Positions 1 through 28,020 of a stretch of DNA of 64,000 nucleotides are shown one piece after another. The DNA comes from Octopus sinensis (taxonomy: Eukaryota), in the NCBI RefSeq assembly GCF_006345805.1, contig NC_043003.1, forward strand, positions 84,940,001 to 85,004,000, in the 5' to 3' direction. The notes under the pieces were generated by a model. The model saw nothing but the letters and a program-made list of their open reading frames with translations. It had not been told where the DNA came from and did not search any database. Both the position numbers and the translations under genes were made by a program. Position 1 is the stretch's first letter. Every line of letters begins with the position of its first letter.

Positions 1-242
1 AGAGCTAGAACTGAAAATTGTGGAAGAAGTAAAACATTTCAGGTGAATGTTTGATTGAATTTACGGTCATATGAATGGCCTGAATATAGAATTTTCTAGA
101 AAAATTGTAAGTGAAGAAATCTTATACAGTTCGTGAAACTTATATTTCATCAAGTACTCTTATTGTAATCATCAATGAAATCATTTTCAAGAATGGAGAA
201 CATAATGAAAATTTCAAAATTACAAAATATAAATTTAAGTAG

Positions 243-260
243 TCACAAAATTACACGCAC
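243..260 (+). CDS. Candidate 18-nt phase-1 micro-exon A1 (xTKLHAx)
   Basis: AAG-TAG tandem acceptor ending at 242, GTAAGT donor at 261. Homologous copy at 1918-1935. With the alternative 21-nt AAG acceptor, only the phase-1 frame is open in both copies. Weak pyrimidine tract. Confidence 0.4.
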
Positions 261-644
261 GTAAGTGTAGATTCTGCACATTGTCGCAAATTGTAAAACT
301 GTTTTGAAATTAAGTGTTTATAGATTGCTTTTTGTAAAGCTCGTTTTATTATATTGCTTTATAACTGAAAACAAATAGTTATAGTTATGCATGGTTTTGG
401 AGAATATGTAGCAGTTGAACGAATCATACCATCATCTGACAACATTAAAGCTATGCACTACAGCTATATAGCTGTCCATGACATTGATATTACATGAATT
501 AGTATTAAATGAAACGATGACATGCGATTGAATATATTATTAAGCATAAAAATGATACACTGTATATTCATAACATCTATTATGGAAAATGACCTTGTAA
601 TTTGATTTTCTTTGTATACTAATACGTATTTTATGTATTTCTAG

Positions 645-674
645 TCCCAGTCACTACTACTAACACTCCAAAAG
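645..674 (+). CDS. 30-nt phase-1 micro-exon B1 (xPVTTTNTPKx)
   Basis: tatttctAG acceptor, GTAATT donor at 675, length divisible by 3, Thr/Pro-rich. Flanking introns conserved with copies at 1361 and 2575. Confidence 0.7.
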
Positions 675-1360
675 GTAATTGATGCTTATATATAATTATG
701 TAATTACTCAAAAAATGTTATAATTATAATATTCAATAATTTATTCATAATTTCTTGATGTAACCGCAAGGGAGAATCTTTAACAGGTATAACAAATTCT
801 TAAGCAGCTCGTCATCTGTCTCCTTTCGGTATGTCTTGAAATGCCGCCTACATTATCATTGCATTACCTCCTGTTGTAGGCGGTAAAATAAATTTGCACT
901 GAACTATTTGGTTTCATGTAAACTATTGAACAGATCCCCAAGAAAATTACTGGACCTCTGCCCATGTTTGCAGCACATAATTTAAAATATGTAATTAACA
1001 AAACGAATAATATTTATTTGATATTAAATACGGATATTATATGCCGTGTTCCTTTTTTCGATGTTGAAGGTGAGGTAAATATACTTATCATAGTTATGTC
1101 ATTGCATTTCAATTACTGTTGGTAGTGCTAATGCATTAAACGATTTTCATTGGAAAGCACATTTATTTTCATCTTAATATATAGTCGTCCATATAAATTA
1201 TATTATATAAAATAGTATGGAAACAAATTATAGCATGCGATTGCAGAAATTATTTGAGTAATCATAAAAAGTTATATAATATATTTCAAATATTTATTAC
1301 AGAATATGAATTTGCAATGAGATTTGTTTGTATAATAATATGTATTTTAAATATTTTCAG

Positions 1361-1390
1361 ACAATAGATCAGCAGGTGGAGGTGTACCAA
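1361..1390 (+). CDS. 30-nt phase-1 micro-exon C (xNRSAGGGVPx)
   Basis: atattttcAG acceptor, GTAAGT donor at 1391. GC-richer than its flanks, and the intron context is homologous to B1/B2. Confidence 0.75.
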
Positions 1391-1917
1391 GTAAGTGATG
1401 CTCATATATAAATAAGTTAATTTTCAAAGAATTTTATAATTAAAATATTCATCGCCTTATTGTTAGATTCTTGAAGTAAGCAACTGACAGAATATTCAAC
1501 GTGTCGCCAAAATTTTGTGTTGATCATCTCTTTCTTTTCGGTTTACGTTGAAAACTAAGTGGAACAGAAGATTACGTGCTTCACGGACATTGTCTCTAAG
1601 AAATATTTATTACTGATTTGGATAGAAAGCCAAGAATGATAATAGATTTACGATAATTGATCAAAACTTGAAATGAAATTGTGTAAGAAAGAAAAAGTTT
1701 CAGGTGAACGATTGATTGAAATTTTGATGATAAAGTATTTACATTCATATGAATGGCGTAAAATATAGAATGTTCCGGAAAAACTTTGAAGAAATCTGAT
1801 CCAGTTTATGAACGATATATTGAATCAAAACTCTTACCGTAATCACCAATAAAATATTTTTCAAGAGAGGAGATTATTATGAAAATTGTAATGTTTCAAT
1901 GCATGAATTTTAAGCAG

Positions 1918-1935
1918 TTAGAAAATTACACGCAT
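1918..1935 (+). CDS. Candidate 18-nt phase-1 micro-exon A2 (xRKLHAx)
   Basis: AAG-CAG tandem acceptor, GTAAGT donor at 1936; paralog of 243-260. Confidence 0.4.
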
Positions 1936-2574
1936 GTAAGTTTAGATATTGTTATGAATTTAAAAATAGTATTGAAACTTACGTGTTTTTAAAATTACAT
2001 TTAGAAAACCTAGTTTTACTATATTGCTTTATAATTTAAAGGATATAGTTAGTTATACATCAGTTTGGGAACTATGAAATAGTTGAACAAATCATAACCT
2101 TCTGTGACAACATCAAAACTGTGCATACCAATAGCATGCTTTATATCTCAGTGCTATAATCTTCATTTATTAAGACATCTTTTGTATGATGAATAGCAAA
2201 CAATTTGGCAATGAATCCCGATATATATCTGATAAAGTCATGCAATGAGTATCCTGCATAACGTAAACCGTCAGTTAGTGGTACTGGTATATCCTTATAC
2301 CGATCTACCTTGTAGTATAAGGTAAATAACTTTGATAAATTCACGCTAAAACTGGATGTCGTCTCTTTCATATAATCCGAAATAGGTAATAAACAAAAGT
2401 AGCAATATTTATTGTATATTAAATGCTAATAATATATTCCGTGTGCATGCTATTGAAATTATTATTAGAGGAAACATAAAAAAGGTATGTTGTATATCTA
2501 TAGTATCTATTATTGAAAATGACTTTGTAATCAGATTTTCGTTGTATAATAATATGTATTTTATATATTTCTAG

Positions 2575-2604
2575 ACATAACCAATCCTACTACACATAAA
2601 AAAG
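2575..2604 (+). CDS. 30-nt phase-1 micro-exon B2 (xITNPTTHKKx)
   Basis: tatttctAG acceptor, GTAACG donor at 2605; paralog of B1. Confidence 0.7.
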
Positions 2605-2705
2605 GTAACGGATGCTTATATATAATTACGTTAATACTCCAAAAATTTTGTAATTATTATATTCGTGTTTTTATTCATAATTTCCTGAGGCAGAATCTTT
2701 AAAAT

Positions 2706-2790
2706 GTATAAGATTCCTAAGAGGTATAAGATTCCTCAGTGGTATAAGATTCCTCGTATAAGATTCCTAAGAGGTATAAGATTCCTCGTC
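2706..2790 (+). repeat. Local minisatellite, 5 copies of GTATAAGATTCCT with short spacers
   Basis: Directly visible; the homologous site in unit 1 (about 786) has a single diverged copy. Confidence 0.85.
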
Positions 2791-3535
2791 ATTTGGTTCC
2801 CTTCGGTATGCGTTGAAATGCTGCTGAGATTATCATTGCATTACCTCCTATCGCAGGCGGTAAAATAAAGTCGTACTCAACTATTTGGTTACATGTAAAT
2901 GATTGAACAGGTATCCCACAAAATTGCTGTGTCTGTGCCCATATTTGAAGCAATTCATAGTTTCAATACGAACTATTATAAAAATACGAAGCTATTTATG
3001 TTTAAAAATGTAAATATGAAATGCTGTCAACCAATATGTTTTGATGTATATTGCTATATATTGATACATGTCTGAAAGTTACTTTAAAGAATGTTACATG
3101 TTACATTGGTCAGAACATTGATGTATAATTTATCGTAAACCAGTGATTGAAATTTGAGAATACTTCGAGGTATAGAAAATGACATGCATCACAAACATTG
3201 CCTCAAATAAATATTTATTATTGACATGGATATGCTCTCTCAGGTTTGGAAGTAGATAGTATAACGAATGGAATAGAAAGCCAATTATGATAATAGATTT
3301 GCGATAATTAAGCTGAGCTAGAATTGAAATTCTGTAAGAAATGAAAAGGATTTAGGTGAATGATTGATTGAATCATTTACGGACATATGAATGGGTTGGA
3401 TTATAGACATTTCGAGAATGATTGTAAGTGAAGAAATCTCACCCAGTTGTGAAAGTTATATTTCTTGAAGAACTCTTACCGTAATCGTTAATGAAATCAT
3501 TTTCAAGAAAGGAGATAATGAAAGTAATTACAAGG

Positions 3536-3915
3536 TTTGTATCCGCTAATTTTTCCTCCCTTCTCCCTTTAGTCGTCATATTGCTTGGTGTGGTGGTGGG
3601 TGTTATTGTTTCATTCGTTTCTTTCTGTTGTGGCTCGGTGTGTCTATTGCTATGTGTGTTGCCTTCGTGATCTGAGTGTCGTGTCAGTTCTATGTGTTGA
3701 TAATACCTTAACCTCTATGTTATTAACCGAACCTCTATGGTCTGCTTGAGCATTTTGATAGAGCACTGATGAGCTTTTCTCTTCTTTGAGCTCCCGCTCA
3801 TCTATACTACATGCTGTCTCTTCAATGTAAGTAGTTGTCTTGTTTCTGCACCGTCCTTCAGTATATCGTAAGCCATATACTATATTCCTAAACTTGCAGT
3901 TAACTTGTGGTCTCA
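3536..3915 (-). mobile_element. Probable retroelement/repeat fragment interrupting tandem unit 3
   Basis: Abrupt end of unit homology at about 3535, higher GC, 88-codon ORF. Family not recognised. Confidence 0.35.
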
Positions 3916-4314
3916 TCCAATATTCTATACAACTATTTTCCGTACATGGGGACCTATTGAATGGATAAGTTCTACAGATCAGGGATTTTGTGGGGCTCCA
4001 GACCTTTCTACTACTTTAAACCACAAAATCCCTGATCTATATATCTTATCATTTGAACTCTATAAAGTAAGTGATTTCCGGCCTTGTAACTATATTAGAA
4101 AGGATTTAGTTGGTGGAATGAATTTTTTAACAGCTGAACATAAGGTCTTTAATATTAATATAGATGTCTAAAAATGTAGTATATATTTACTTGATTGTGA
4201 AAAAATCTATTTCAAACTATAAAACATCTAATATCAATTATGCTATTTATTATAAAGCAGATTATGGTAATGATGTTTTTATATAGATATAAATATTATT
4301 ATTAAGCGAATTTT

Positions 4315-4515
4315 AAGCGGCGGCTGGCAGAATCGTTAGAACGCCAGGGAAAATATTTAGCGGTGTTTCTTACGTCCTGAGCTCTAATTCCGCCAAGGTC
4401 GACATTACATTTCATCCCTTTCGGGATCGATGAAATAAGTACCAGTTACGCACTGGGGCCGATGTAATCGATTAGCCCCCAACCCCGAAAATTCAGACAT
4501 TGTGCATATAGTAGG
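4315..4515 (+). mobile_element. Octopus tRNA-derived SINE, family A (ggcggcgagctggcagaa...tttcatcctttcggggtcgataaa...)
   Basis: A-box-like TGGCAGAATCG, central ttcatccctttcgggatcgatgaaataagtacc motif; many copies in the window. Confidence 0.85.
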
Positions 4516-5405
4516 AAGAATTATCAAACGGATTTTACAATCATATTTAGAAGAATAGTTTTGGTTGCGTTTCTCGAAACGTTTCCGTTGAAACTACAAA
4601 AATACAATTTAAGATTGAGAATTAGTTAGGTATACCTCCAAAATCACTTATGAAGATGGATGCATCAGCCGTTAGTGACAGTTTTTTGCTGATGTCTGGA
4701 CTTGGTGAAATGTGTTTATGAATGAACAGTGTGAAGTGTCATTCTTACAATCCAGTCATACAAAATATTATGATAGGAACATTATACGCACAGTCTTCAG
4801 CTGTGTTAAGTTACATGCTTTCTATCGATGAATTGAATTTATACTACAAGTTAAATATATTTTGTGTATCGAATGGACGTCTTAATATTCATCATATGTT
4901 ATGCAGATCGATTGCGAGATATCAGAAATTTCTATCGTTCTCATGCTGTCTCCTCCTTGAATAGGATTGTCATATATTTTGAGGAATTATTCATCATATG
5001 ATAATGGCATGAGTTGACACGGTAGTTACGTTTACGGTGAACCAGTGTGTAATTTCTTTCGTATAGTTTAAGGTCGAAAAATTATGAAATGAGCAATACT
5101 TTCTCAATTTTCATGTCTGTTTTAACTCTATGTGTTTCGCCTAGATATATGATAAACTAAATATCATCCGTATTGTACATGGCCTCATGGTAACATATTG
5201 CATTTTAGAAATATTGACTGGACATTTACGGGGTTTTTGTTCATGGTTCTTATTTGAGTATATTTGCCACATATTATAATTAATTATTTTACCGTATGAT
5301 ATATAATCTGAAACATTATGAGACAAAACAGAAATATATATTTGTAATATGTCTTATTAAATAGCGTTTCATAGTTTGAACATAACATGTATCTGCATTT
5401 TCCAG

Positions 5406-5441
5406 GGACTAGTGCTGCTGCAAGCTTTGAAAACCCAAAAT
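5406..5441 (+). CDS. 36-nt phase-1 exon D (xTSAAASFENPKx), putative GPI omega-site region
   Basis: gcattttccAG acceptor, GTAAGT donor followed by aatgcttata (same motif as gtaagtgatgctcata and gtaattgatgcttata after C/B1). Contains a small-residue cluster S-A-A. Confidence 0.7.
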
Positions 5442-5628
5442 GTAAGTAATGCTTATAAATGCATGTACTATTATCCTTTATATCTTACAGTCGTGTTGTT
5501 CATAATTTCGTTAATGGATTCATTAATATCTTTAATAATAATACTAAAATATATCAGATGTTATTTATATATCAGATGTTATTAAATATAACTGCTACAA
5601 AAAAAATCTATTGCTATTTATTTATATA

Positions 5629-6013
5629 GTGGAAGCACTCCGTCGGTTACAACGATGAGGGTTTCGGTTGATCCGACCAACGGAACAGCCTGCTCGTGAA
5701 ATTAACGTGTAAGTGGCTGAGCACTCCACAGACACGTGTACCCTTAACGTAGTTCTCGGGGATATTCAGCGTGACACAGAGAGTGACAAGGCCGGCCCTT
5801 TGAAATACAGGTACAACAGAAACAGGAAGAAAGAGTGAGAGAAAGTTGTGGTGAAAGAGTACAGCAGGGATCACCACCATCCCCTGTCGGAGCCTCGTGG
5901 AGCTTTAGGTGTTTTCGCTCAATAAACACTCACAACGCCCGGTCTGGGAATCGAAACCGCGATCATACGACCGCGAGTCCGCTGCCCTAACCACTGGGCC
6001 ATTGCGCCTCCAC
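5629..6013 (-). mobile_element. Full-length tRNA-derived SINE, family B, with 10-bp TSD
   Basis: Minus-strand head has A box TGGCCCAGTGG and B box GGTTTCGATTCCC. Flanking direct repeat TATTTATATA at 5619-5628 and 6014-6023. Confidence 0.9.
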
Positions 6014-6643
6014 TATTTATATATACATGTGGTTGAAACTTGCTTTGATGAAAATATTATGTAGAATTTTGAGAATAATTTCTTGACATGATAGTGAATT
6101 ATTGATTGAAGCAATATATCAATATGAAATAGTGGAAGTTGCACATTACTCTCATTGAATCTAATAGATATTAACTTCGGACATCTACATCGTGTTAAAA
6201 TTTAGTAAACCTATAGTATAGTCTACAGAATAGATAGAAATCTATAGCTTTTAATTAATTCATATGCACTAAAATTTAAAGTGTGGTCTATGAGTGAGTA
6301 GATCAAATGAATTTTTTAACTTCTGAACAATAAGCATATAGTCGTAATGTGGATATGATTTTTGTTCTCAAAATATCTTTCAAACTATAAGACATTTAAT
6401 ATATTTGATTTACGTTTACTATAAATGCCAATGAAATCATTTACTCCATAATAGATTAAAAGGAAATTTTAAGAATTATAAAAATTCTAACTGGGCCCCA
6501 CCTGCACGACATATGTACACGACATATGGTTGTAATGCATGCGCCTCATGTACCCTTATCAGACGGGGATTTATGATGGGTATATTGGACTTCGTATATT
6601 CTACCACATTGTTACTTTGTTGGCATGCACTGCTCTCTAATTC

Positions 6644-6702
<59 letters not shown>

Positions 6703-6712
6703 CAACAACAAT
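6644..6712. repeat. (AAT)n/(AAC)n microsatellite
   Basis: Direct. Confidence 0.95.
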
Positions 6713-6713
6713 A

Positions 6714-6812
6714 AAGGCCTGAAATTGGGGGAAGGGGGATAGTCGACTACATCGACATCTGTATTCAACTGGTACTTAATTTATCGACCCCGAAAGGATG
6801 AAAGTCAACATC
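6714..6812 (-). mobile_element. SINE family A fragment
   Basis: ttatcgaccccgaaaggatgaaa core. Confidence 0.8.
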
Positions 6813-6821
6813 TTCTTCCTC

Positions 6822-6891
<70 letters not shown>

Positions 6892-6914
6892 CATTATTAT
6901 TATTATTATTATTA

Positions 6915-6966
<52 letters not shown>
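6822..6966. repeat. (TTA)n microsatellite
   Basis: Direct. Confidence 0.95.
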
Positions 6967-8130
6967 GACATAGTCTTAGAGAAAAATATCAGGAAATGTA
7001 TCATGATATGTTTCCATATATTACTCACAGTGTCGCATAAATTTTATAGGGGTAGATAACACACTATATTCCAATATATTAATGTTTAATAGTTCAGTTT
7101 ATATAATACATGTGTGTGTGTGTGTATTAGGCATGTAAGTATCAATAAATAGTCCAAAAAATTATTACGCTTTATTATTTCTTTAATGAAATTGCTTTAG
7201 GATAATCTATGCAATCTAATACCCCTAATTCTAATACTGATTTACTGAAAAAAAGTGTGTATTGTAAATAAGGATATACAGTAAATTCAATTACAATATG
7301 CAGGAGAGTGTCATTGGACCTACTATCGCAACACCTAGGACACTTATTTCTGACATTGTAAAAATTTTACACAGTAAGGAATTTGCAGTAAGGTGAATGA
7401 ATTGGTCAGCAGTCGACGATAAGCTTGAATTTAACATTTAAATCAGTCTCCTTCATTGAGGATATGTTAAAGTGAATGAAAATGGACTAGGATATTAATA
7501 TGTCAGTACTAAGAGGCCAAAGGAAATATCACATCCAGAAATAACAAGAAGTGCAGATCCTGGCTTATGAAATATAAGTGTATTATCAGTTTACTAAAAT
7601 GATGAATTGTTTATTACTATTTAATTGATATAATAATTTGTATGTGTGTATATTTAGATCGACTCCTTTCATTCGTATAGTAATTTCTTGAAAATAAAAA
7701 TAAAATTACGCATAATAATATTATTAATCAGTGCAAATTGCAGTCATAATATGCAAAATTGAATAGATAGACAAATTAACATCATTCATAGAAGATATGA
7801 AATTGCATTGTTTAAGGACATGCCATATTTATATCGCCGTAGAAACGTAAATAGCTCAACAATACATACGATATTAAAGCGATCTAATCTTGCCTAACCA
7901 GCATAGTTTCCATCAGGAAACAGTCGTAAACGCACATATACACGTCTCCAGCATCTGTTTATTAATAATCAAAGTGAATTCACTCTTCAGAGTGAATACT
8001 CTAAACATCAGGTATACCATCTAACAAGCACTTATCTAAGGAAAATATAATGAGCTCAACGTTATCAGCTTCAAGAGGCATTACAATCAAGCCTCTATTC
8101 CTTTATGTGTAGAAACAGAAAAACATTCTA

Positions 8131-8384
8131 TTGGGTTGGTGCATAATTATTGCGGGGTTTTTTTTCCAACAAACTTTATTCAACAAAAAAATGACAATAT
8201 TTAACAAAAACATCTTTAAATGACGGTCTGACCGTCTGCCAAGCAAACGGGAAGCAGTAATTGAAGTAGATGGTGAATATGCTCCGGAATAATCATTTAA
8301 AGATGTTTTTGTTAAATGTTGTTATTGTTTTTGTTGAATAAAATTTGTTGAAAAAAACCCTGCAATAATTACGAACCAACCCAA
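8131..8384 (+). mobile_element. Internally deleted mariner element (MITE-like)
   Basis: TA at both ends, TIR TTGGGTTGGTGCATAATTATTGCGG (similar to Hsmar1/MADE1), about 95-bp imperfect inverted arms, residual transposase C-terminus DRLPSKREAVIEVDGEYAPE*. Confidence 0.9.
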
Positions 8385-8685
8385 TACTTATTATGGTTCA
8401 TCTGAAAGCTCAGGTACCAATTTATACCATAGCTTGGAATATTGTTGATACAACTACAACTTATTTCAACAAAGATTTGTCTATCTTGAAAGTTCTAGAT
8501 ACTGAAACAGTCTATAATATCCCGCAGTAGTAATTATAAGGATTTTTCAATATGTTGATTGATGCTGTTTATCCTAAACAAGGTAACAGAGAGTCGAGAA
8601 AATTATGATTAGGAACTACGTAGAGTAAACTCTTTTGCTTATTTATACACATAATGCATACCTATATATCATTCAGTCATTCATT

Positions 8686-8885
8686 CTACCTACCTACCTA
8701 CCTACCTACCTACCTACCTACCTACCTACCTACCTACCTACCGACCTACCTACCTACCTACCTACATACATACATACATACATACATACATACATACATA
8801 CATACATACGTACATACATATATACATGCATATATACATACATACATGCATGCATACATACATACATACATACATACATTCATAC
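8686..8885. repeat. (ACCT)n followed by (ACAT)n microsatellite
   Basis: Direct. Confidence 0.95.
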
Positions 8886-9367
8886 ATTATGGAAGTCGAC
8901 TCGTGACATGATAAAACTGCTTTCTAAACCCATTTGAGTCTAAGAAATATCTTAAGTTTTGTCTCTCCATCGCTAATGACGTATCATATGACTCCTAAGG
9001 CCTGCAAGAGACCTACAAGTCATTCCTCACCGATCACAAGTCAGCCATTTAGCAATAGCCCGACCAATGGGTGTTGGGATCTACAATGCCAATAGAGTCC
9101 ATTGGCTGACCCACATATTCTACTAAAGACGGTGCACAAGAGAACATAATGGATTTGTAGACGGGCCACCTTCATAATCCCACTTGTTATTGAGTAGGCC
9201 TGCCTTTGAGAAGCTGACACGACTGCGCTGGTCACGCAAAAATATTTGTTTCGTACCCTTCTCAGAAAGAGAGTTCACATGCTTCATATATTTACCAGCC
9301 CGTTTCGATTGAATGTATGCAAACCATCCATTCATCCATCCATCCATCCAGTCAGCCAGCAAGCCAG

Positions 9368-9469
9368 CCATACATACATACATACATACATACATACATA
9401 CATACATACATACATACATACATACATACATACATACATACATACATACATGCATGCATACATACATAC
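9368..9469. repeat. (ACAT)n microsatellite
   Basis: Direct. Confidence 0.95.
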
Positions 9470-9915
9470 AGGGTGGATGTAAAGTCGTATGATCATCATC
9501 GACAATTAATCTTGTTCCTAGACTTTAAGCACAATGGATGTCAGCAATTTCTGTGTTGAAATTAAATTCAATAACAACTTGCACAACACCGCAAAGACTC
9601 ACCTACAAAGCCAAGTACTCTAGAAACAGGCAAGAGCAAGGTCTCTGGCTTTGTAATAAGGAAAGTGTAATTTGGGAGTAGTCTTTTGTCCAGTCAACAT
9701 CCCAGATATTCCTCATTTCTTGCTCTGAGTTGTTTGAAATGAATAAATGAAGCACTGTTTCTGAATAATACAATGCTTACTCATTAAACCTCACTCTATC
9801 TTATAAATTATCGTCGGATCCTTTTTATGCTTTGACTGAATTACATGTAAAGCGAATGAATATATCTTCTGTTTTATTTAATTATTGTATCAAATTTTAT
9901 TTTATTTCATTTTAG

Positions 9916-9980
9916 ATGTGCAAATTCCTTTGACAAGTCTTCTGGCTTTGTTGACCTCGGCGATTTTGGTTTTTAATTGA
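9916..9980 (+). CDS. Terminal exon E (YVQIPLTSLLALLTSAILVFN*), GPI-signal-like hydrophobic tail
   Basis: Strong acceptor tttatttcattttAG. Phase-1 reading gives 20 mostly hydrophobic residues then TGA, in frame with exon D. Confidence 0.65.
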
Positions 9981-10250
9981 AGAACACTTACAGAATACCA
10001 AGCACATTAAGAATACATTTGTTTAAATTTTATCCTTAATTTTCTATCAGTTATGATTTTCAAAAATTAATATATGCTACTTCTAATATTGATTTTATTT
10101 GGCTAGACATGAATTGAAGTGACGAGGGAGTCAGTAAAAGTAACTCCAGTGTATTATTGATAGTTTTTTTTTACAGACTCACTGAAGGATAAATGAAATT
10201 TATTGCAGCAGAGTTTTCAACTAAAAGAAATGAGATACCGAACTATATAG

Positions 10251-10256
10251 AATAAA
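10251..10256 (+). promoter_or_regulatory. Candidate polyadenylation signal of the micro-exon gene
   Basis: AATAAA about 270 nt after the exon E stop codon. Confidence 0.3.
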
Positions 10257-10561
10257 ACATCCAGTTCGGTGTTTACTGTGACCTACTCTCAAACATGTTC
10301 CTTTTACTACAAATTTTGGAGCCAGCGGCGAAAGGGGAACTCTATGTGGTCACTTGATTTGCTGGAAATAGCAACCAAGTTTTTTCATGTTCCACTGTCT
10401 TACAAAACCCATTATATAATGAGGTCCTATACTAAATGGTCAAGATTGGAACATCTTTCATCATATGGCTGCTCAGTCATTTCTAAACTGGAGGGAAGCA
10501 ACAAGCTAATATTGATCACTAGACACACTTACAAACACACTATCTAAATTAATTTCAAATT

Positions 10562-10745
10562 TAGGTACAAGGCCAGCAATTTCGAGAGAAGTAGGTTAGT
10601 CGATTACGTCAGTACATGACATATTCTTTATTTTATCTACTTTAGAGGAATGAAAAGACAAGTTTGCCTTGGTTACAGACATAAAAAATCGGAACAAATC
10701 CTTTGCAGGAATTGTTTCGACGCATTGACGATTCTGTCAATCCAT
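10562..10745 (-). mobile_element. Degenerate SINE family A
   Basis: aggccagcaatttc...tagtcgattac...atgaaaagacaa similarity to the other copies. Confidence 0.55.
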
Positions 10746-11655
10746 GGCCCTTCTTTTTCTACTAATAATGGATAAGTATTGTTCTCACACACGCAGGCGC
10801 ATCAAGTTTAAAAATCATCCATCCACACTTAATACATATTAAAAGTTCGAACTCTACTCTTTCCCTCTCAATGTGTAACCTTGTAGTAAATCAGTTGTAA
10901 ATAGGTTTTGACTGAACGGAACCGGTTGAATCTATTTTACTTCCCTCACACTATTAATATTTCTGGGATAAGCTGGGAAAAGACATATGGTCAAATGTGT
11001 TCCAAAGATTACCACTCAACTTTTTGAATACCGGTGAATCATGATAGCGGTTCTTTGGCATCTCCTTGGTAATGCTGACAAAAACAAACAAAGGAAGTAA
11101 AGAATGTTGTTCAATGTAGCCTTCCTTTTTTCTAAAGACATTACAAAGTGGTCTGAGTTTGATTTGGTCTGCTATTTCTAGCAGTCCCGTAGAGTTTCCC
11201 TCATTTATTTTATTTCTTCACAGTAAAAACCAAATACGTTTCTGCGATTTAGTTTGAATCATCTGCTGTGGTTATTTCATTTTCCTCGCGTCACTATCCT
11301 TTGAATGAATGTCACGGCTTCCCACTACACTTCTTCAAATGAAGCTATTAATAAAAAAAGCAATACCTACAAATTATTAAGTATATTCAATTCTTTTGAT
11401 TTTGATATATTTTTTTTCAACGATCGGAAAATTTTATTTGACTAAATTATAAAATGTCAAATAATTCTAAATTTCTAAATGAACTAAAAATTAATGATTG
11501 TTGTAATAATTATTAAAATAAACATTTTATTTCACTTCACGAGTGTATTCTTTCTTTTTTGTTGCTGTAATTTTTACCCTTCAAACTTTGCTTTGTCCTG
11601 ATTTACACTTCATAATAGTTAAGTTCTATTTTGTGGTAGAAGCCACAGTCATATT

Positions 11656-11880
11656 ATGCGGAGAAAATCCCTGGAGAAGGACATCATGCTCGGAATGGTC
11701 AGTGGCAAGAGAGGAAGAGGCCGACCAAGAACCCGCTGGCTTGACATCATCAATAGTGATATCGGAAAGGACATAGCCAATCTGAAAGAAGCGGCCCAGG
11801 ATAGAACTGACTGCAGGACACTGATCCATCGAGTAACCGAGAGTCGACTTCGACTGAACGGATAGATAGATAGATAGATG
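11656..11880 (+). mobile_element. 5'-truncated RTE (BovB-like) LINE 3' end
   Basis: ORF ...LGMVSGKRGRGRPRTRWLD...AAQDRTDCR...SRLRLNG* is the typical RTE C-terminus; followed by a (GATA)n tail. Confidence 0.9.
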
Positions 11881-12421
11881 ACTGATTGAAGTAATTGTGA
11901 AAATGGGTGACAAAGAGTGAAAAGACTAGATGTGTAGCAGTTATTGATTGGATTTTGATGTTGTGGTGATAGTTGTTAAAGACGGTGGAGATGCATGGTA
12001 TTGAGAGAAAGGACTGTAGAGATGTGGAAGTCATTAAAGGGGCTGTAGAAATTGAGCAGGCTATTGGGATATGCGACTGTAATTGATAAAGCTGTGGAAA
12101 TGAACAAGATCGCATTAAACCCAGTTAAATAGTTTTCTATCACCTTGAGAATTTCGCGTTAATAGAAAATCATTTAAATAATCGATACGTCAGCTTTTTC
12201 CAGTGCTCTCTCAATAGCATAATAGGTACAGGAATGGTCTTGTGGTTAGGAAATCTCCTTCACACTGTCCGATCTTCCTATATATTACATTGTATATGTA
12301 TACTCTACCAACGGAGCAATCAAAGCCTGTGTTGAAATTCTCTGTAGAAGTGTGTTGGCGAAGTAATTCCCGGAAAATAAGAAAAAATCGTCCACTGCTG
12401 AATCTGAAATTATCTTTGTTA

Positions 12422-12463
<42 letters not shown>

Positions 12464-12775
12464 ATCAAAATAAGCAACAAGGATATCCAGAGGTAATGCA
12501 GTACGATATCTTTGATATCCTTGTTGCTTATTTTGATTTAAATCACCTTACTTTGAAATTGTATGGATAATACCGGGTGTCTCAACTTAAGTACCATATT
12601 CATTTGAATATATATATATAATAGAATTTTGACAGTGAACAGGTTGCGGTCTCAAGGCAACGAAAATATTTTGGCAAATTAAATTTAAATGTTGAAAGGA
12701 ATCTAAGGGTTTTGTGTGTTTTAAATGGCTTATAAACACCTTCCGCGTTGCAATTGTTTTCATTCAGGTCCTCCG

Positions 12776-12825
<50 letters not shown>

Positions 12826-12989
12826 AAAAGACAGAACCTACGAGAACTTTTTTTAATCACTACAAATGATTCGACCCCTCAAAACAACCGTAAGAAGGCA
12901 TTCCAAATTTTGGGATTCACTACTGGCCAATTTGTGCATTCAACATTAGCCAATAAACCTTTAAATATTTGTCTTCATCTTCCACGTTC

Positions 12990-13620
12990 ATTAAATCTTC
13001 TCTTCCTCCTTTCTCGTCATTCCTCCTCCACCCTACTCCCTCTTCATCCTCTTCCTCCTCTACCTCCTCCCCTCCCTTTCCGCCTTCTCCTCCTCCCCTC
13101 CTCAACTTCCCTCTCCTCGCTTCCTCCCCCACCTACTTCCCTTCTTCCTCCTATCCCTTCTTCTTCTTCTTCCTCCTCCTCCCCTTCTCCCTTCTTCATC
13201 TTCTCCCTTCCTCCTTCCATTTTCTTCTGCCCCTCCTTCAATTCTTCCATCTTCTCTCTCTTCTTCCCCTCTTCCTCCCGTTCTTCTTCATCCTTCTACT
13301 CCTCTTCCAGCCCTACTTCTTCCTTCTCTGTCGTCTCCTCTTCTTCTTTCTCCTCCTCCTCCTTCCCTTCACCTTCTTTCTCTTCTTCCTCCACCAATTC
13401 TTGTTTTTCGTTTTCTTCCTTCTCTTCCTCCCCTTCTTCTTCTTCATCTTTCTTCTCTTCCTATTTCTTCTCTTCCTCCTCCTCCCCTTCATTTTCCTTC
13501 TTCTCATCTCCTACTATTTCTCCTGCTGCTGCTGCTACTGCCCCCCCCCTCCTCCTTCTCCACCTTCTACTTTCCCCCTCCCCCTCCTCATTCCCCTCTT
13601 CCTCATCCCAACTCTTTTTC
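12990..13620. repeat. About 630-bp homopyrimidine (TCC/TTC) low-complexity tract
   Basis: Direct; source of the S/P/F-rich and E/G/R/K-rich spurious ORFs. Confidence 0.95.
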
Positions 13621-14653
13621 AGCACGTAATTTTTCTCGAACGTAATTCCCGAACGTAATTTTTGTGATTCGAAAGAGTGACTAGTGTTATATTTGGTTTT
13701 CTTAATGCAATGGTGAACCAAAATTAATCTACTTGAATGGTATATGCTTCATTCTGCTAGAGAACTTCACAGAAATAAATCTTGGATGGAGTTCAATGTC
13801 TACAAAGGAAAAAGTAGTATAACACTATACAATGTTTAACCAAGATCTCTATAATTTCTATTTACTCATCGTCAAACCCTTAGTTAATAATAATCCTTAA
13901 CGCAGAGTCGTTTGGTTTAGCACAATCGTTCCAAATTTTGCCAAAGTGCCTTACAGTATTTAGTTAAATTCCTCTGTACGTACTGATTTTGTATTCCAAC
14001 AATGTTAATTTTGCCTTACATTTTCCTGGAGTCAATAAAATAAATGCCAGACGGGAATTGCTGAAATTAATCCACTGCACATGTGGCTCTGTATCTATGT
14101 GAATAACTGACGTATTTATCAATACGGTAACAACGGAATTAATAGTAGAGGACTGAATTATTATTTATATTTATATTTTATACACAGCTCTGTGGATTGA
14201 CATTTTTCGATGGTTTCCTGGTGATTTTTTTCGTCCTTTAAACAGATTACTAAACTTAAGTTTGAACACGTACACGCATACCTCCTATGTATGCATGTAT
14301 GAATGTGTGTTTGTATGTGTGTATGTGTATGCATGTATGCATGTGTACATGTATGCACGGATGTGTGCATGTATACATATACACACAACACCACCAGATG
14401 ATTGGCAAATACACATGCATGTGAAGAGCAGAAATACAGAAACATTCCTATAGAGTTAGTAGAACTCAAACTTTTCTACTGTTTGTTAATATTTCAGTTT
14501 AAAACCAGTTTTGGGAAAGAACAATGAATCAAAGAATAAGACAGAATTGTTAATCTATTGTCTTTCAATATTTATAGTTTCGTCCCTTGTGTGCAATTTT
14601 CGCGGGAGTGGAAACTTTCTTTCGCTCTTCAGATACTTTCTTTCATTTCACAC

Positions 14654-14951
14654 ACCAGTAATACATTATTTACATTAGATCGACATGTGTCCTCATCCTG
14701 TCTGTTGTTACCACAACGTTGCGGCTGATTTACTCTGCAGCCTTCATCAGGTGTCCTAGTAGGATTTTGAACCCAATCCTGCGTTCAAAATCCTACCACG
14801 ACACCTGATGAAGGCTAGAGAGTAAATCAGCCGAAACGTTGTGGTAACAATAAACAAGATAAGGACACGTTTCCGTCTAATGTAAATAATGTAAATAATG
14901 TACAGAATTTCTCATCTCAAAAATACAGAACTGTATTACCAGTAATACATT
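14654..14951. mobile_element. Tail-to-tail inverted Penelope-like terminal repeat, about 230-bp palindrome, with 14-bp flanking direct repeat
   Basis: Arms about 14662-14770 and 14785-14892 are reverse complements. ACCAGTAATACATT at 14654-14667 and 14938-14951. Confidence 0.75.
14798..14845 (+). ncRNA. Minimal type-I hammerhead ribozyme motif
   Basis: cac-CTGATGA-a-ggct(12-nt loop)agcc-GAAA-CG-TT-gtg: intact core boxes, 4-bp helix II, palindromic ACGT in place of helix III, helix I cac/gtg. Confidence 0.6.
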
Positions 14952-15399
14952 TAATTAACTCATTTGCGTTTTACCCTTCTCTCTCAAAAATTGTATTTTG
15001 TCTATTCGGAACAACACCAAAAATATTTTCGTCAGAAAATTTCAGTTAATCAGCTTTGTACACATATATATAATCCTTTATTTTTGTTTTGTATTGTATT
15101 GTGAAAATTATAGATCTGTACATGTAATTACTTATGCTGCTGTTTGCTTTCTTCTTGTTTATTTTTTAAATGATATTTTGTGTTTTGAATATCACTCTTC
15201 AATATTATCGTTGTCGAATTTGTGGTAGTGTTTTCGAGAGGTCCTCCAAGTGTGTAATCTGTTTATCTTGTTGTGTCGACAACACTGCCAATACCAGTTA
15301 AATACATAAATAATACATATGATCACAGCCACAATGAGAATGATGCAAATGATTGGAGTTCGATCCAGAGACTGCTGAGGTATTTTAGTACCTACAATG

Positions 15400-15466
<67 letters not shown>

Positions 15467-15489
15467 AAGAAGAAGAAGAAGGAGAAGAA

Positions 15490-16790
15490 AAAAATTGTTG
15501 ACAAATTGTTGACAGAATGCACCGCCCAAAAGCAGATATAGAACGACTTTACATGCCGAGAAAAAAGCTTGGTTGTGGATTTTACAACTGGAATTAACGA
15601 TGATTGACACAATTGACCTAAACATCTACCTGAAAAACGCTGATGACTAGATGTTAAAACTTGTTTTAAAGCAGGAAAACAAGAAAATATCATACTCAGT
15701 AACAAAACAGGCAAAGAAATATCTAAATGAATTCCAAATACAACAAATCCCAGAATTAGACGTACTGGAAACAAGTAGAGAAAAGGCTAAGCTTATGAAA
15801 ACTCATGCTAAAACTGCTGCCTTAGATATTCTTACTGATAGATAGCATGAAAAATCTCTCAATAGCAAATACCCAAAGAGAGTTAATAATACCGATGTTG
15901 ACAGAGCGAGCCCTTACCCGTCAATGGTTAGTGTTCTCTGGCTTAAAAATCAAAGACAGAAGGGTTTATCATAGCAGCCCAAGATCAATACCTATTGATA
16001 ATGACCTACCATGTCAACATATTAAAGAACGGCAGTAACCCAACATGTTGTGTATGTAAACAACAAAATGAAACCATTGATCATGTTGCCACCATTTGCA
16101 GTCTTCTTGTGCCTACAAAGTATCTCAACAGGCATGATTGAGCAGCACAGTATATTACTGTGTAATTTGCAAAAACTTGGACCTGCCCCATGATAAAAAC
16201 TGATGGGAACGCAAGCCACTTCCAGTGCTTAAAAATGACCACATCTCAATCCTCTGGAACTTCACCGTTCAAACTGACAGAAAGATAGCTGTGAATAGGC
16301 TAGACATTATATTGAAGGACTTCAGACAAAGATCATGCCTCCTCACCAATATGACTGTTCCAATCGATATAAATGTATCTGTCAAAATCTACCAAAAACT
16401 GAGCAAATATAAAGATCTTGAAATAGAAATTGGCAAAATGTGGTATCTCAAGACTAAAACAATACCTGTTGTCATAGGTGCCTTAGGAATGATAGCAAAA
16501 GGAGCTGATTGCTACCTAGCACAGATATCACGAAATCCCCAAATGGTTGAAATTCAAAAAATAGTGCTCATGGGAATTGCCCATATGCTACGTAAAATAC
16601 TGTCTATGGAAACTCAAATTTTCAAACAAACTTATAATTTTCTTATGTTTTCTTAAACATTCTCTAGAACAATACTTTGTGCAAAACCAAATATATGCAC
16701 CCTAGTCATAACACCAACTTTAACTTCTAACTTGTTGTCTATTGAGGTCTCTGGGTGATAGTTGGAGTTAACTTGTATAAATAGAAAGCA
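15490..16790 (+). mobile_element. Decayed R4/Dong-like non-LTR retrotransposon 3' part
   Basis: Post-RT region, CCHC knuckle (CCVCKQQNETIDHVATIC) and restriction-like endonuclease (ILWNFTVQTDRKIAVNRLDII...KYKDL...IPVVIGALG), with stops and frameshifts. Confidence 0.9.
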
Positions 16791-16855
16791 AAAATCAAAC
16801 ATATAATAATAACAATAATAATGATGATGATGATGATAATAATAATAATAATTAG

Positions 16856-16978
16856 TCCCCTAAAGGATGAAAGGCAAAGCCGACCTCGGTGGAATATGAA
16901 CTCCGAACGTAGCGGCGGGCGAAATGCTGTTAAGCATTTCGTCCAGCGTGCTAACGTTTCTGTCAGTTCGCCACCTGC
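16856..16978 (-). mobile_element. SINE family A 5' half
   Basis: aaggatgaaaggcaaagccgacctcggtggaat...gctaacgtttctgtcagttcgcc. Confidence 0.85.
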
Positions 16979-18873
16979 CATAATAATAATAATAATGATG
17001 ATGATAAAGCATTTTTAAAAAATTAATGCAAAATAGTTGAATTTTAAATTTATAGGCTGTACTAGATCAACAGTATTTAAGCCATGATCAAACATGTTCC
17101 AGCTGTAACTGTCAGCTTATGTTTGTTATATTTTCAGACAAAGGTTATCAAGGACCGAATTACCCAATCTAACCTGATTTTAAAAGCTTTCGTAGATTTG
17201 GAAATGCTTTTACCAACAAATATAGACCTCATCGCGGATATACTTCTTGTTAATTGAATTGGATTACGATTATATCTAGATTGGAAAGTGTAGTAGCAGA
17301 GCATGCAATATTTTAAGATCACAACGCAAAGGATTCTGGATTGCAAATTGAAAAAAACAAAAAAAAACAAAAAAAAAACAGAAGACAGACTTTGCACAAG
17401 AGATTCCATTAAGACAGATTTTGCACAGCATATTCCAATAAGACTAGCAATATGATGGCGTTATATAAGATTCAAATAGGATCTAGGAATATAAGATCGA
17501 AATAAGAACTTGAATGTAGAAGCAAGATAACTTTCATTCACTATTTTGCTCTAAATGTCGAACATGAAATGACTACAGGAATCAGAAGTAAGTTCAGTAA
17601 TTCAGCTACAACAGAATTTAGTAGAACTTTTAAAGCGTGAGTGGAGACCTGTCAGTGGTCAACAAAACAATTTAGTTGAGGATAGCCTCCACCATGTAAA
17701 ATGCATTCTAGGCTTCTTTAGGAAACTGTGATGACTTTGTAACAACTGTTTCATGCAAAAGGTGAACTTTATACCATGCCAGAGCGACTTCATCAGAATG
17801 CAGTCACGGACCCAATAATTTCTTTGACAAGTGAATTAATTAAAATGATTTTTATCAACCAATCAACGATTCATATTCTGTGTACTTTTACGCGTTTTCC
17901 TAATCAGTACCAAAATATTTGACACATTGATGCCCAAAGAATAACTTAATCTTCATACATTACTGTCCGAAGAACAGAGGATTCTACATATTTTGATTAC
18001 TGGGTAACAGAATATTGTAGTAACTATTTCGCTAGTCGTTGTATATAAGATGCAACATTACATATGTGAACATTTCCATTCTAGGAACAGTCCTATGCTG
18101 TTACGAATACAGAGCATGTGATATGCATACACGTATACATTTGCATAGGAGTTTATATGCGTTCGTGTATGCATACTTGAACATACATTTGTCCGTACTC
18201 ATACACATTTCTCAACGTTGGAATAGATCTTACTTGTGACAACATTTTGTACGTCTCACATTGAGTTTAGTCAACTTAATAATTTCAAGTAGAAATATAT
18301 CTGCAATACATATTTTCTATGATATCGCCAAGGGTTAGAAAAATTTAGGAACAGTTTTTTTTTTTTACAGATATTTCATAATGTGCATCATCTCCATTCT
18401 ATATGTCACAGAGAACGGGGGGGGGGAGTGCCTATTACATGTCATATTTTATGGAATGTAATATTTCAAATCTTGAAAGCACAATTCTTAAAGTGTTAAT
18501 ATTATCTCAGCAAAGAACCGCTACATTATTTACCACTTAGTTTAAGGGAAATACACAGAAAATACTCTGTATACAGATTTGAAAAACAAACAAACAAACA
18601 AAATACTATATATTATTTACCTTTTTGTTTTGAGTAATACACCGCCATAAAACCCCGACTGTGCGCTGACCAGTTCGCCGAGTACCAAATCAGCATTCTG
18701 TTAGTAGAAGAAACTATACTAACAGTTTTCGGTCCACAAAATTGACCAATCATATTATCTGTTTCAATATCTGCCGATGAGAAAACAACGATGATGCAAA
18801 GAATAAGAATAAAGTGTAATGTAGAGAATGTTAGAGCATTAATACAACCATACGAGTATTATTAATGCAAACA

Positions 18874-19499: not shown

Positions 19500-20550
19500 A
19501 AAACTTAGATAAAACTTAGATATGTTTCGACCAGAGATTGGTCCAGGCCATGTCTAACTTAATAGCACCACCTGATAGGATTATTCGAATCCTGTTTAAG
19601 TCAAGTTTTGTTCAAGTAGTGAGTTCTTGTTGGGTGAGTTGTATCCAATTATGGGTGGCTTATCTGGTATTCTTTGAAGGAATCTATCCAGACTCTGTTT
19701 GAAGTTGATGGGATCCTTTTCCTCTTTGATCTCCCTCGGGACAATGTTAAATAGGGCAGGGCCTGTTGAGGAAAAGAAATTATGTTGCAGTGTACATGTA
19801 TGTTGTGATCTTGAATTTGGCAGGGGACGTATAGCCCGTGGTCCAAGTCTTGGATGAACCTTGAAGCTAATGTTTAGGTCCTTTGGGCAAAGTTGGCGGT
19901 ATATTTTCCACATCGTACAAATGATGTACCGCTCACGGCGACGCTGGAGGGAGTAAAGTTTCAAGGCTTTAAGGCGATCCCAATAATCGAGAGCAGCCAT
20001 GCCTTCAATTTGTTTAGTGAGAGCCCTCTGGGGTGACTCAATTCTGGAGATGTTTTGTCTTGTGTGAGGAGACCACAGTGGGCAGCAGTATTCAAGGTGT
20101 GGCCGTACAAAGGAGGAAAAAAGTGGTATGATGACACCTTGTTCTCTGGACCGGAAAGTTCTTAAGATCCAGGAACTCATCCTACGAGCTATATCGACCT
20201 TCTTGTTGATGTGTGCACTCCAACTGAGATCGTCATCAACAATTACACCCAGGTCTCTGATATTGTTAGAGGCTGTGAGCGGTTCCTCTGAAGGAAGAGA
20301 GTATGGTTGTTTTAGTGAGGAATTTCTTCCAAAATGCATCAGCTCAAATTTTTCCTCATTCAGTTGCATTTTGTTTCTGTCTACCCATTGACTCACAGCA
20401 TATTGATCACACTGGAGTTGAGTTCGGTCTGCTTCTTCATTGACGATTTGCTGGAGCTTAGTGTCATCAGCGAATATTTTCACTTTGCAGTGATGTACGA
20501 CACTGGAAAGGTCGTTTACGTAAATTATGAAGAGTAGCGGACCCAAAACA
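19500..20550 (-). mobile_element. 5'-truncated CR1-clade LINE (RT C-terminal part, 316-aa open frame 19596-20546)
   Basis: [32 protein letters not shown] and YSLQRRRERY motifs. Confidence 0.92.
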
Positions 20551-27904: not shown

Positions 27905-28020
27905 ATCTCGATCACGAGACCGACCAGACCATCAGGTGTTATTACACACCGATGGTCAAAATGCGTTCGCATTGTTTTAGCCTTCAAAGACGCCACCCCG
28001 CTGGCTAAGCGAGCAGGCCA
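27905..28020 (-). mobile_element. Short SINE-like fragment (tggcctgctcgcttagccagcggggtggcg...)
   Basis: GC-rich island between TA tracts; recalled octopus interspersed repeat. Confidence 0.45.

Follow-up and report, generated by a model that had tools for sequence, protein, structure and literature searches.

Positions 1-9980 of a 64,000-nt stretch of the Octopus sinensis genome (NCBI RefSeq assembly GCF_006345805.1, contig NC_043003.1, positions 84,940,001 to 85,004,000 of the forward strand; hereafter, the window) probably constitute the 3′ third of a counterpart of two annotated O. sinensis genes, LOC115213828 and the gene encoding XP_036360301. The gene would encode a cassette-built mini-mucin with a predicted glycosylphosphatidylinositol (GPI) anchor and would be variable at three levels. 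Its design is a real example, in a cephalopod, of the architecture known from schistosome micro-exon genes (MEGs) and from SmPoMuc of Schistosoma mansoni. A preliminary description of the window had proposed an unannotated micro-exon gene for a Thr/Pro-rich surface protein, built from seven small segments (A to G; Table 1). All seven were found on the + strand at, or adjoining, the positions proposed for them, with the lengths and phase-1 frame described, and the internal ones lie between AG and GT. The donors of the six internal segments read GTAAGT (four segments), GTAATT and GTAACG, and phase-1 joining of A to G translates to TKLHALPVTTTNTPKDNRSAGGGVPIRKLHAYITNPTTHKKGTSAAASFENPKYVQIPLTSLLALLTSAILVFN*, which is exactly the peptide that had been put forward.

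The existence of a micro-exon gene was borne out by its annotated relatives. In a word-indexed search of 5.8 billion clusters, the spliced window peptide matched only four proteins, isoforms X1-X4 of LOC115213828 (96-110 aa), which are named 'mucin-2-like', 'integumentary mucin C.1-like' or 'uncharacterized'. The corresponding locus (L001; CM016865.1, 84.86-84.91 Mb) holds a gene that spans 33 kb and has a coding sequence (CDS) of 333 nt in 11 exons. An exhaustive phmmer search of 1.84 billion representatives added one more true homolog, XP_036360301.1 ('autotransporter adhesin BpaC-like'; O. sinensis), whose locus (L002; 85.01-85.07 Mb) lies 155 kb from L001; the remaining matches (P0006-P0017) were generic Thr/Pro low-complexity sequences, and neither search returned a homolog outside O. 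sinensis. The claim that the gene is unannotated thus applies to the window only, the other two loci having RefSeq models under uninformative mucin or adhesin names. Window positions 1619-18570 are collinear with L001 34295-53133 at 95-97% identity, and the mismatch-only divergence of the window from L001 and L002 is 1.0-3.1%. Over unique 3′ sequence, the distance between L001 and L002 is 0.65%, against 1.0-2.3% between the window and each of them. We considered whether the window is an exact copy of either locus and rejected this, as the window is an outgroup to both. Either L001 and L002 arose by segmental duplication very recently, or they are haplotypes left uncollapsed in the assembly. 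Both have a CUB-domain gene downstream on the opposite strand.

The complete CDS of isoform X1 was rebuilt exactly from an 11-exon map consisting of a 46-nt signal-peptide exon, a 30-nt exon, six 21-nt exons, exons of 30 and 36 nt, and a 65-nt terminal exon. The map places all introns in phase 1, with symmetric internal exons throughout (21, 30 or 36 nt, phase 1-1), as the preliminary description had supposed of the internal coding exons. Micro-exons of 21-36 nt account for nine of the 11 exons and for 222 of the 333 CDS nucleotides (67%). The four RefSeq model isoforms differ only by skipped whole 21-nt cassettes: X2 is X1 minus the cassette at L001 24401-24421, X3 lacks this cassette and 27913-27933, and X4 lacks it together with 29669-29689. 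To our knowledge, the NCBI pipeline issues alternative isoforms only when they have transcript support. Exact-protein look-ups for transcript evidence in public read assemblies returned only the NCBI genome record. A cephalopod system for diversifying a surface protein had been proposed from the sequence of the window; the whole-cassette skips of the model isoforms X1-X4 would fit this proposal, in which the diversifying function is putative.

The 5′ part of the gene was expected upstream of the window, and the counterparts agree. Signal-peptide exons were located 5′ in both annotated loci, at L001 10001-10046 (encoding MKTIYLLIVVVAIVS) and at L002 4847-4892 (encoding MKTIYLLIVVMAIVS, donor GTGAGT), and the signal-peptide exon of the window gene must therefore lie upstream of the window. 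The XP_036360301.1 model begins with MGQERNRRQQ.., an unrelated sequence, while a perfect signal-peptide exon is found 10 kb upstream of its exon 2 (L002 4847-4892 and 10001-12150); neither the 5′ end of this model nor the name 'autotransporter adhesin BpaC-like' is likely to be right.

Segments E, F, and G of the window are the counterparts of the last three exons of LOC115213828 and are bona fide exons. E corresponds to annotated exons at L001 35352-35381 and L002 38486-38515 (PTNPTTTEK), in which it is spliced in phase 1 as predicted. F has the same sequence as the annotated exon at L002 40885-40920 and differs from L001 37748-37783 by two nonsynonymous changes, and G shows 0/65 differences from the annotated terminal CDS at L001 43069-43133 and L002 46309-46373. 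Segments B and C, which have no counterpart among the annotated exons of L001 and L002, are probable cassettes. The flanks of B (tttctag before the segment, gtaattgatgct after it) are homologous to those of verified cassettes, and B is Thr/Pro-rich like the annotated ones; it was not confirmed by an annotated exon because neither locus holds a 95%-identical counterpart (best, 80%). The flanks of C (974-1553) are 86-88% identical to L001 and L002 units with annotated 21-nt cassettes, and its splice sites (ttttcag before, gtaagtgatgct after) are intact; the body of C is unlike the 21-nt cassettes in sequence and is not Thr-rich.

Table 1. Features of the candidate micro-exon gene in the window (positions are those of the window)
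Feature	Position	Strand	Length (nt)	Encoded peptide	Acceptor pyrimidine fraction	Character and status
Tandem array (3′ end)	1-3530	+				Intronic units with cassettes; from self-BLAST and alignments
A	243-260	+	18	TKLHA	0.40	AG/GTAAGT; probably not an exon
B	645-674	+	30	PVTTTNTPK	0.70	Cassette, phase 1-1; probable exon
C	1361-1390	+	30	NRSAGGGVP	0.65	Cassette, phase 1-1, length a multiple of three; possible exon
D	1918-1935	+	18	RKLHA	0.50	AG and GTAAGT; probably not an exon
E	2575-2604	+	30	ITNPTTHKK		Cassette, phase 1-1; confirmed through annotated counterpart exons
F	5406-5441	+	36	TSAAASFENPK		Micro-exon, phase 1-1; harbors the omega-site region predicted for the GPI signal
G	9916-9980	+	65	VQIPLTSLLALLTSAILVFN, then TGA		Terminal coding exon; encodes the hydrophobic C-terminal tail
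Candidate poly(A) signal	10251-10256	+				First AATAAA 3′ of the stop codon; pattern scan

Alignment of the cassettes showed that variability is confined to the exons. B, C, E, and, less clearly, F belong to one family of paralogous cassettes. The 30-36 nt enclosed by AG and GT can hardly be aligned among them, while the intron is conserved over ~130 nt upstream (..tatgtattttaWatatttcYag) and over at least 100 nt downstream (gtaaNNgatgctYatatataa..); the conserved flank strings are ..TATGTATTTTAAATATTTCCAG and GTAAGTGATGCT.., respectively. For the 15 units with 21-nt cassettes, nucleotide diversity of the exon (0.228) was ~5 times that of the ±400-nt flanks (0.049), and the exon level was reached only by alignment windows that overlapped the exon or the ragged edge of the alignment. 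In pairwise comparisons, the rate of divergence between paralogs was 3-10 times higher in the exons than in the flanks, and the nine distinct cassettes gave proportions of nonsynonymous (pN) and synonymous (pS) differences of 0.27 and 0.17. Between the window and L001/L002, E carries 6/30 substitutions, all of them nonsynonymous, against a regional background of 3.1% (P = 2.8e-4). Taken together, E and F differ between the window and L001 by eight nonsynonymous and no synonymous substitutions, whereas G is unchanged (0/65). The counts are small but the pattern is consistent, and it is the one described for schistosome MEGs (PMC4350168). All cassettes with intact splice sites have lengths that are multiples of three; two cassettes with broken donors, L001 33292 (CT) and L001 21659 (AT, 29 nt), are not part of the L001 models.

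The cassettes reside in a tandem array of long intronic units, the 3′ end of which lies in the window. The units are ~1.65-1.75 kb long; unit 1 (1-~1675) and unit 2 (~1676-3313) are followed by part of a unit 3 (3314-3530). Self-BLAST of the window aligned 59-461 with 1737-2128 (75%), 521-758 with 2446-2688 (79%), 808-975 with 2785-2952 (81%), and 2-210 with 3315-3523 (82%). The same unit family makes arrays with a 1756-bp period in L001 and L002. The possibility that the unit is a dispersed transposon with exonized fragments was rejected, as a search of the window, L001, and L002 (~150 kb) gave no copies beyond the array. L001 contains six 21-nt cassettes (HTTSTT, PTTSTT, PTTKTT, PTKKTT, PDTKST, and PDTNST) and L002 contains nine (PGTNTT three times, PVTNTT, and TTAKTT five times), so that the L002 arrays differ strongly from those of L001 despite the low divergence of the unique flanks. 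In addition, window 1-1619 has no match of at least 95% in L001 or L002 (best, 80-88%), and the array has accordingly been remodeled between the window and these loci. We also observed that ~400 bp of the window (3295-3698), including the partial unit 3, are missing at the corresponding point of L001 and L002, and that the partial unit (82% identical to window 2-210) ends just short of the 18-nt A-type segment expected there. One 30-nt cassette (T/AINPSAS..), whose L001 copy is that with the CT donor named above, has one broken splice site in each copy: L002 36483-36512 has an AC acceptor and a GT donor and is used by the model, and L001 33292-33321 has an AG acceptor and the CT donor and is unused.

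Protein features were read from O. sinensis X1, and we infer that they carry over to the window protein. The hydrophobic N-terminal signal peptide is read as MKTIYLLIVVVAIVSC|VTS, with a hydropathy peak at residues 5-16. Residues 20-80 contain 24 Thr, 8 Pro, and 5 Ser, so that 37/61 (61%) are Thr, Ser or Pro; for window cassettes B, C, E, and F jointly, the corresponding value is 39%. The C terminus of X1 reads ..G(T/S)(S/R)AAAS-FENPKYVQIP-LTSLLALLTSAILVF-N*, i.e., by inspection, the small residues S-A-A-A-S, the polar spacer FENPKYVQIP, and a hydrophobic run that is followed only by Asn and the stop codon, with no cytoplasmic tail. The window encodes the same tail in G. The S-A-A-A-S motif lies ~11-15 residues before the hydrophobic run (~10 for its last Ser). 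A GPI signal generally has small residues at omega, omega+1, and omega+2, then a polar spacer, with ~8-12 residues separating them from the hydrophobic stretch. By such general rules, the product is probably a GPI-anchored, mucin-type O-glycosylated peptide. Of the surface protein foreseen in the preliminary description, the Thr/Pro-rich composition, the signal peptide (in the counterpart), and the GPI-type tail were all recovered, while GPI anchoring itself is a prediction. Pfam scans of the O. sinensis protein and of the window peptide gave nothing above threshold; a faint match to Mucin PF01456 (E = 1.9; 8.9 bits against a gathering cut-off of 34.7) stayed below it.

Taken as a whole, these observations suggest the following model, for which L001 and L002 serve as reference. 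A 46-nt signal-peptide exon would be followed by a ~10-kb intron and an array of ~1.75-kb units, each contributing a single micro-exon, 21 or 30 nt long and in phase 1-1, that encodes a Thr/Pro-rich cassette of 7-10 aa. The array would be followed by the 36-nt exon (..SAAASFENPK) and by the 65-nt terminal exon with its hydrophobic tail. The predicted product would enter the secretory pathway and become a mini-mucin with dense O-glycosylation and a GPI anchor, its mature part being ~60-120 aa long. Variation would arise at three levels. At the germline level, units are gained, lost, and rearranged through unequal recombination, as shown by the differences among the arrays of the window, L001, and L002. 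The second level is a fast, mainly amino-acid-changing substitution limited to the cassette exons, the flanking introns staying alike as described above. The third would be the skipping of whole cassettes in the mRNA, as in the four RefSeq model isoforms, which could never shift the frame because every cassette is a multiple of three in length and in phase 1-1.

How far the seven segments can be trusted individually depends on how often such segments occur by chance. Window positions 1-10000 contain 119 (+ strand) and 115 (- strand) AG..GT segments of 18-36 nt whose length is a multiple of three and whose phase-1 frame is open, and the splice and phase properties from which the segments had been recognized are therefore not, by themselves, above chance. 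One could accordingly ascribe all seven to chance, as stretches that happen to be open within AT-rich DNA, intronic or intergenic, that contains no gene. We regard this as exceedingly improbable: it is refuted for E, F, and G, which match annotated exons of a gene whose CDS was rebuilt exactly, and it does not explain a family of cassettes with conserved flanks and variable exons. Acceptors of every annotated exon, like those of B, C, E, F, and G, have a pyrimidine fraction of 0.65-0.80 (background over all AGs, 0.49), and GTAAGT occurs 10 times on the + strand but twice on the - strand of positions 1-10000. Five of the seven segments thus stand above chance through annotated counterparts, the cassette family, pyrimidine tracts, and the strand bias of GTAAGT. 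The 18-nt segments A and D do not, and for these two chance is the best reading left. The alternative, in which the seven-segment transcript is exactly right and A and D are constitutive or frequent exons adding TKLHA and RKLHA, we consider improbable. Both segments do have an AG acceptor, the consensus donor GTAAGT, and an open phase-1 frame of a multiple of three, and AG and GT are retained in the closest copies of A (L001 20741-58 and L002 15752-69) and in the copies identical to D, both of them situated between annotated exons (L001 34697-34714 and L002 35828-35845). Exons of 18 nt are easily missed by aligners, and even an intact 30-nt cassette, L002 17884-17913, was left out of the L002 model. 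However, the acceptors of A and D are no richer in pyrimidines than the background, neither segment is Thr/Pro-rich, and their AG/GT copies are absent from all five RefSeq models (X1-X4 and XP_036360301.1). Segments of this type, which are marked by TTAGAAAATTACACGCAT and TCACAAAATTACACGCAC, occur in 24 copies (two in the window, eight in L001, and 14 in L002), and only the six copies at window 243 and 1918 and at the four positions just given have AG..GT. The other 18, all of them among the 22 copies of L001 and L002, have AA..AT yet still encode RKLHA, so that an open frame carries no information about A and D. The two form a second paralogous pair whose conservation is neither above nor below that of the surroundings, with no exon-specific pattern of divergence. 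A and D are probably intronic, and we think it doubtful that they are used even on occasion. The 74-aa product that had been deduced is therefore probably wrong in part; as omission of A and D keeps the frame, the remainder of that gene model is unaffected, with E, F, and G confirmed and B and C probable.

A more conservative explanation is that the window holds part of an ordinary small mucin-like gene, in which the cassettes are constitutive, the isoforms are artefactual, and the array differences reflect neutral repeat instability or errors of assembly. Several points that weigh against a cassette-built, three-level variable mini-mucin would favor it. Near-identical cassettes invite mis-mapping (PTTSTT and PTTKTT differ by 2 nt), and the skip junctions between them could be artefacts of short-read mapping. 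At 0.65% divergence, L001 and L002 could be uncollapsed haplotypes of one assembly, in which case 'paralog' may have to be replaced by 'allele'. The AC acceptor of a cassette that is included in the L002 model is a warning of imperfect assembly or models. Two further points weigh against the mini-mucin without favoring the ordinary gene: the pN and pS values derive from 21-nt exons and non-independent pairs, with small numbers, and B and C are called from their sequence and not from transcripts. On the other hand, neutral instability is not expected to produce a diversity of 0.228 in exons and 0.049 in flanks, nor eight nonsynonymous changes with no synonymous ones; the NCBI practice mentioned above speaks against artefactual isoforms; and the array of the window differs independently from those of L001 and L002. 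For these reasons we regard an ordinary mucin-like gene as unlikely and prefer the variable, cassette-built mini-mucin. GPI anchoring, O-glycosylation, and surface location are predicted by sequence rules, and the C-terminal hydrophobic stretch might instead be a transmembrane anchor or a retained peptide. Its 15-16 hydrophobic residues could just span a membrane, but the protein ends one residue past them with no cytoplasmic or basic stop-transfer residues, and S-A-A-A-S with its polar spacer roughly fits a typical GPI signal; a transmembrane or retained form of the predicted mini-mucin is thus a reading to which we give little credence.

Additional features were noted in the remainder of the window. 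The introns of the micro-exon gene contain short interspersed element (SINE)-like repeats at 4320-4500 (+) and 6719-6803 (-), of which 4410-4496 and 6803-6719 are inverted copies (77%), and 5630-6010 resembles another, GC-rich repeat. An ARAGORN scan of the window, including the SINE-like repeats, found no tRNA. Positions 8129-8386 form a 258-bp near-palindrome whose arms pair at 78%; it resembles a miniature inverted-repeat transposable element and is kept at the matching intron position in L001 and L002. Long microsatellites occupy parts of the last two introns (6644-6714, 6818-6966, 8686-8887, and 9369-9470), consisting of (AAT)n and (TTA)n around a SINE fragment and of (TACC)n/(TACA)n blocks. 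Downstream, positions 12000-14000 are strand-skewed and pyrimidine-rich (GC skew -0.37, AT skew -0.20) and partly rearranged relative to L001 and L002, and yield long, spurious Ser/Pro/Phe-rich open reading frames (ORFs) at 12748-13658. A multi-CUB-domain gene lies on the - strand at ~15200-18860 and beyond (exon 18616-18858, Pfam CUB, E = 2.8e-5); its O. sinensis counterpart is a 1066-aa CUB-repeat protein. Retroelement reverse-transcriptase ORFs (Pfam RVT_1) were found on the - strand at 19596-20546 (E = 1e-6), 35900-37108 (1e-26), and 53358-53801 (7e-8), and the neighboring ORFs at 34236-35899 (-) are probably part of one long interspersed element (LINE)-like element with the 35900-37108 ORF. 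Near the GC-richer end of the window (GC 0.43), a 342-aa ORF at 62524-63552 (+) has no Pfam match; its product, with a CX2CX4HX4C-like motif (CYLCNSEAHLRYEC) and a tail rich in Pro, Thr, and Lys, may be a retroelement Gag-like protein.

Micro-exon genes have been treated as a platyhelminth, and largely parasite, speciality tied to immune evasion (PMC4350168, PMC4398949). They 'appear to be restricted to platyhelminths' (PMC4350168) and have been described as a neodermatan gain (PMC4398949), although genes containing micro-exons are noted from elsewhere, with a smaller share of the CDS (PMC4015677). In the literature that we searched, no paper links micro-exons with octopus or cephalopods or mentions LOC115213828 or XP_036360301. 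The octopus gene is a convergent form of a known architecture in an unexpected lineage; a gene of the same design, unrelated in sequence, in a free-living cephalopod would mean that this architecture is convergent and not tied to parasitism. It is conceivable, and we put it forward tentatively, that the locus is an independently evolved MEG/SmPoMuc-type system in full, i.e., a lineage-restricted, germline-reshuffled array with cassettes under positive selection and combinatorial skipping. Were this the case, each animal or cell type would display its own set of GPI-anchored glyco-peptides, and should L001 and L002 prove to be haplotypes, one and the same animal would be hyperpolymorphic at this locus. 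The product could have a role in the glycocalyx or mucosal barrier, in recognition of self or microbes, or on the gamete surface. The combination of a tandem array, exon hypervariability, and skipping isoforms in a CDS of 333 nt would also provide a compact system for asking how exons of 21 nt are recognized and selected. Standard annotation gives such genes misleading names such as 'autotransporter adhesin BpaC-like' and 'mucin-2-like' and misses them in other genomes, so that more may be hidden in mollusc assemblies.

Among known surface proteins, mammalian CD24 and CD52 and the TcMUC mucins of Trypanosoma cruzi combine a signal peptide, a short Thr/Ser/Pro O-glycosylation core, and a GPI signal in a very small mature peptide, with the mucin core encoded in one or two ordinary exons. 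The octopus gene would be alike in product type but has its core encoded by micro-exon cassettes, and its protein is not a member of PF01456, the score being far below the gathering cut-off. In-frame cassettes that are combined by alternative splicing and add a Ser/Thr/Pro-rich, O-glycosylated stalk to surface proteins are known in vertebrates from the variant exons of CD44 and the MSD1 micro-exons of NCAM. Those cassettes are inserts in large multidomain proteins, whereas the octopus cassettes make up approximately the whole mature protein and lie in a recently amplified array. For comparison with MEGs, we took the defining properties from PMC4350168, PMC10526429, and PMC4015677: in MEGs such as MEG-4 (the 10-3 antigen), small symmetric exons between signal-peptide and terminal exons hold most of the CDS, skipping gives rise to near-identical protein variants, and evolution is accelerated. 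In the octopus gene, nine of the 11 coding exons are 21-36 nt long and in phase 1-1, and their 67% of the CDS is slightly below the 'up to 75%' reported for S. mansoni (PMC4015677). MEG products are mostly secreted and often hydrophobic peptides, in contrast to the predicted GPI-anchored, mucin-like octopus product, and the octopus micro-exons recur regularly in tandem, each within a long intronic unit that is conserved. The schistosome-type architecture that had been suggested for the window is upheld as to symmetric cassettes and fast-evolving exons, with cassette skipping suggested by the model isoforms, but not as homology: phmmer and Pfam detected no sequence similarity, and the octopus gene is for this reason not a member of the MEG or SmPoMuc families. 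The closest known design would be that of SmPoMuc, in which 0-20 copies of a 27-bp exon are varied by splicing (PMC4015677). The octopus gene differs in ending in a GPI-type signal rather than a non-repetitive C-terminal domain, in having individually diverged cassettes and not identical repeats, with no sequence similarity to SmPoMuc, and in belonging to a free-living animal and not a parasite, with trans-splicing not indicated. What the two appear to share is a Thr/Ser/Pro-rich, mucin-like region built from a tandemly repeated micro-exon (in octopus, six to nine or more 21-nt copies with a 1756-bp period) and a variability that stems from array differences together with alternative splicing, the latter being predicted for octopus from the model isoforms.

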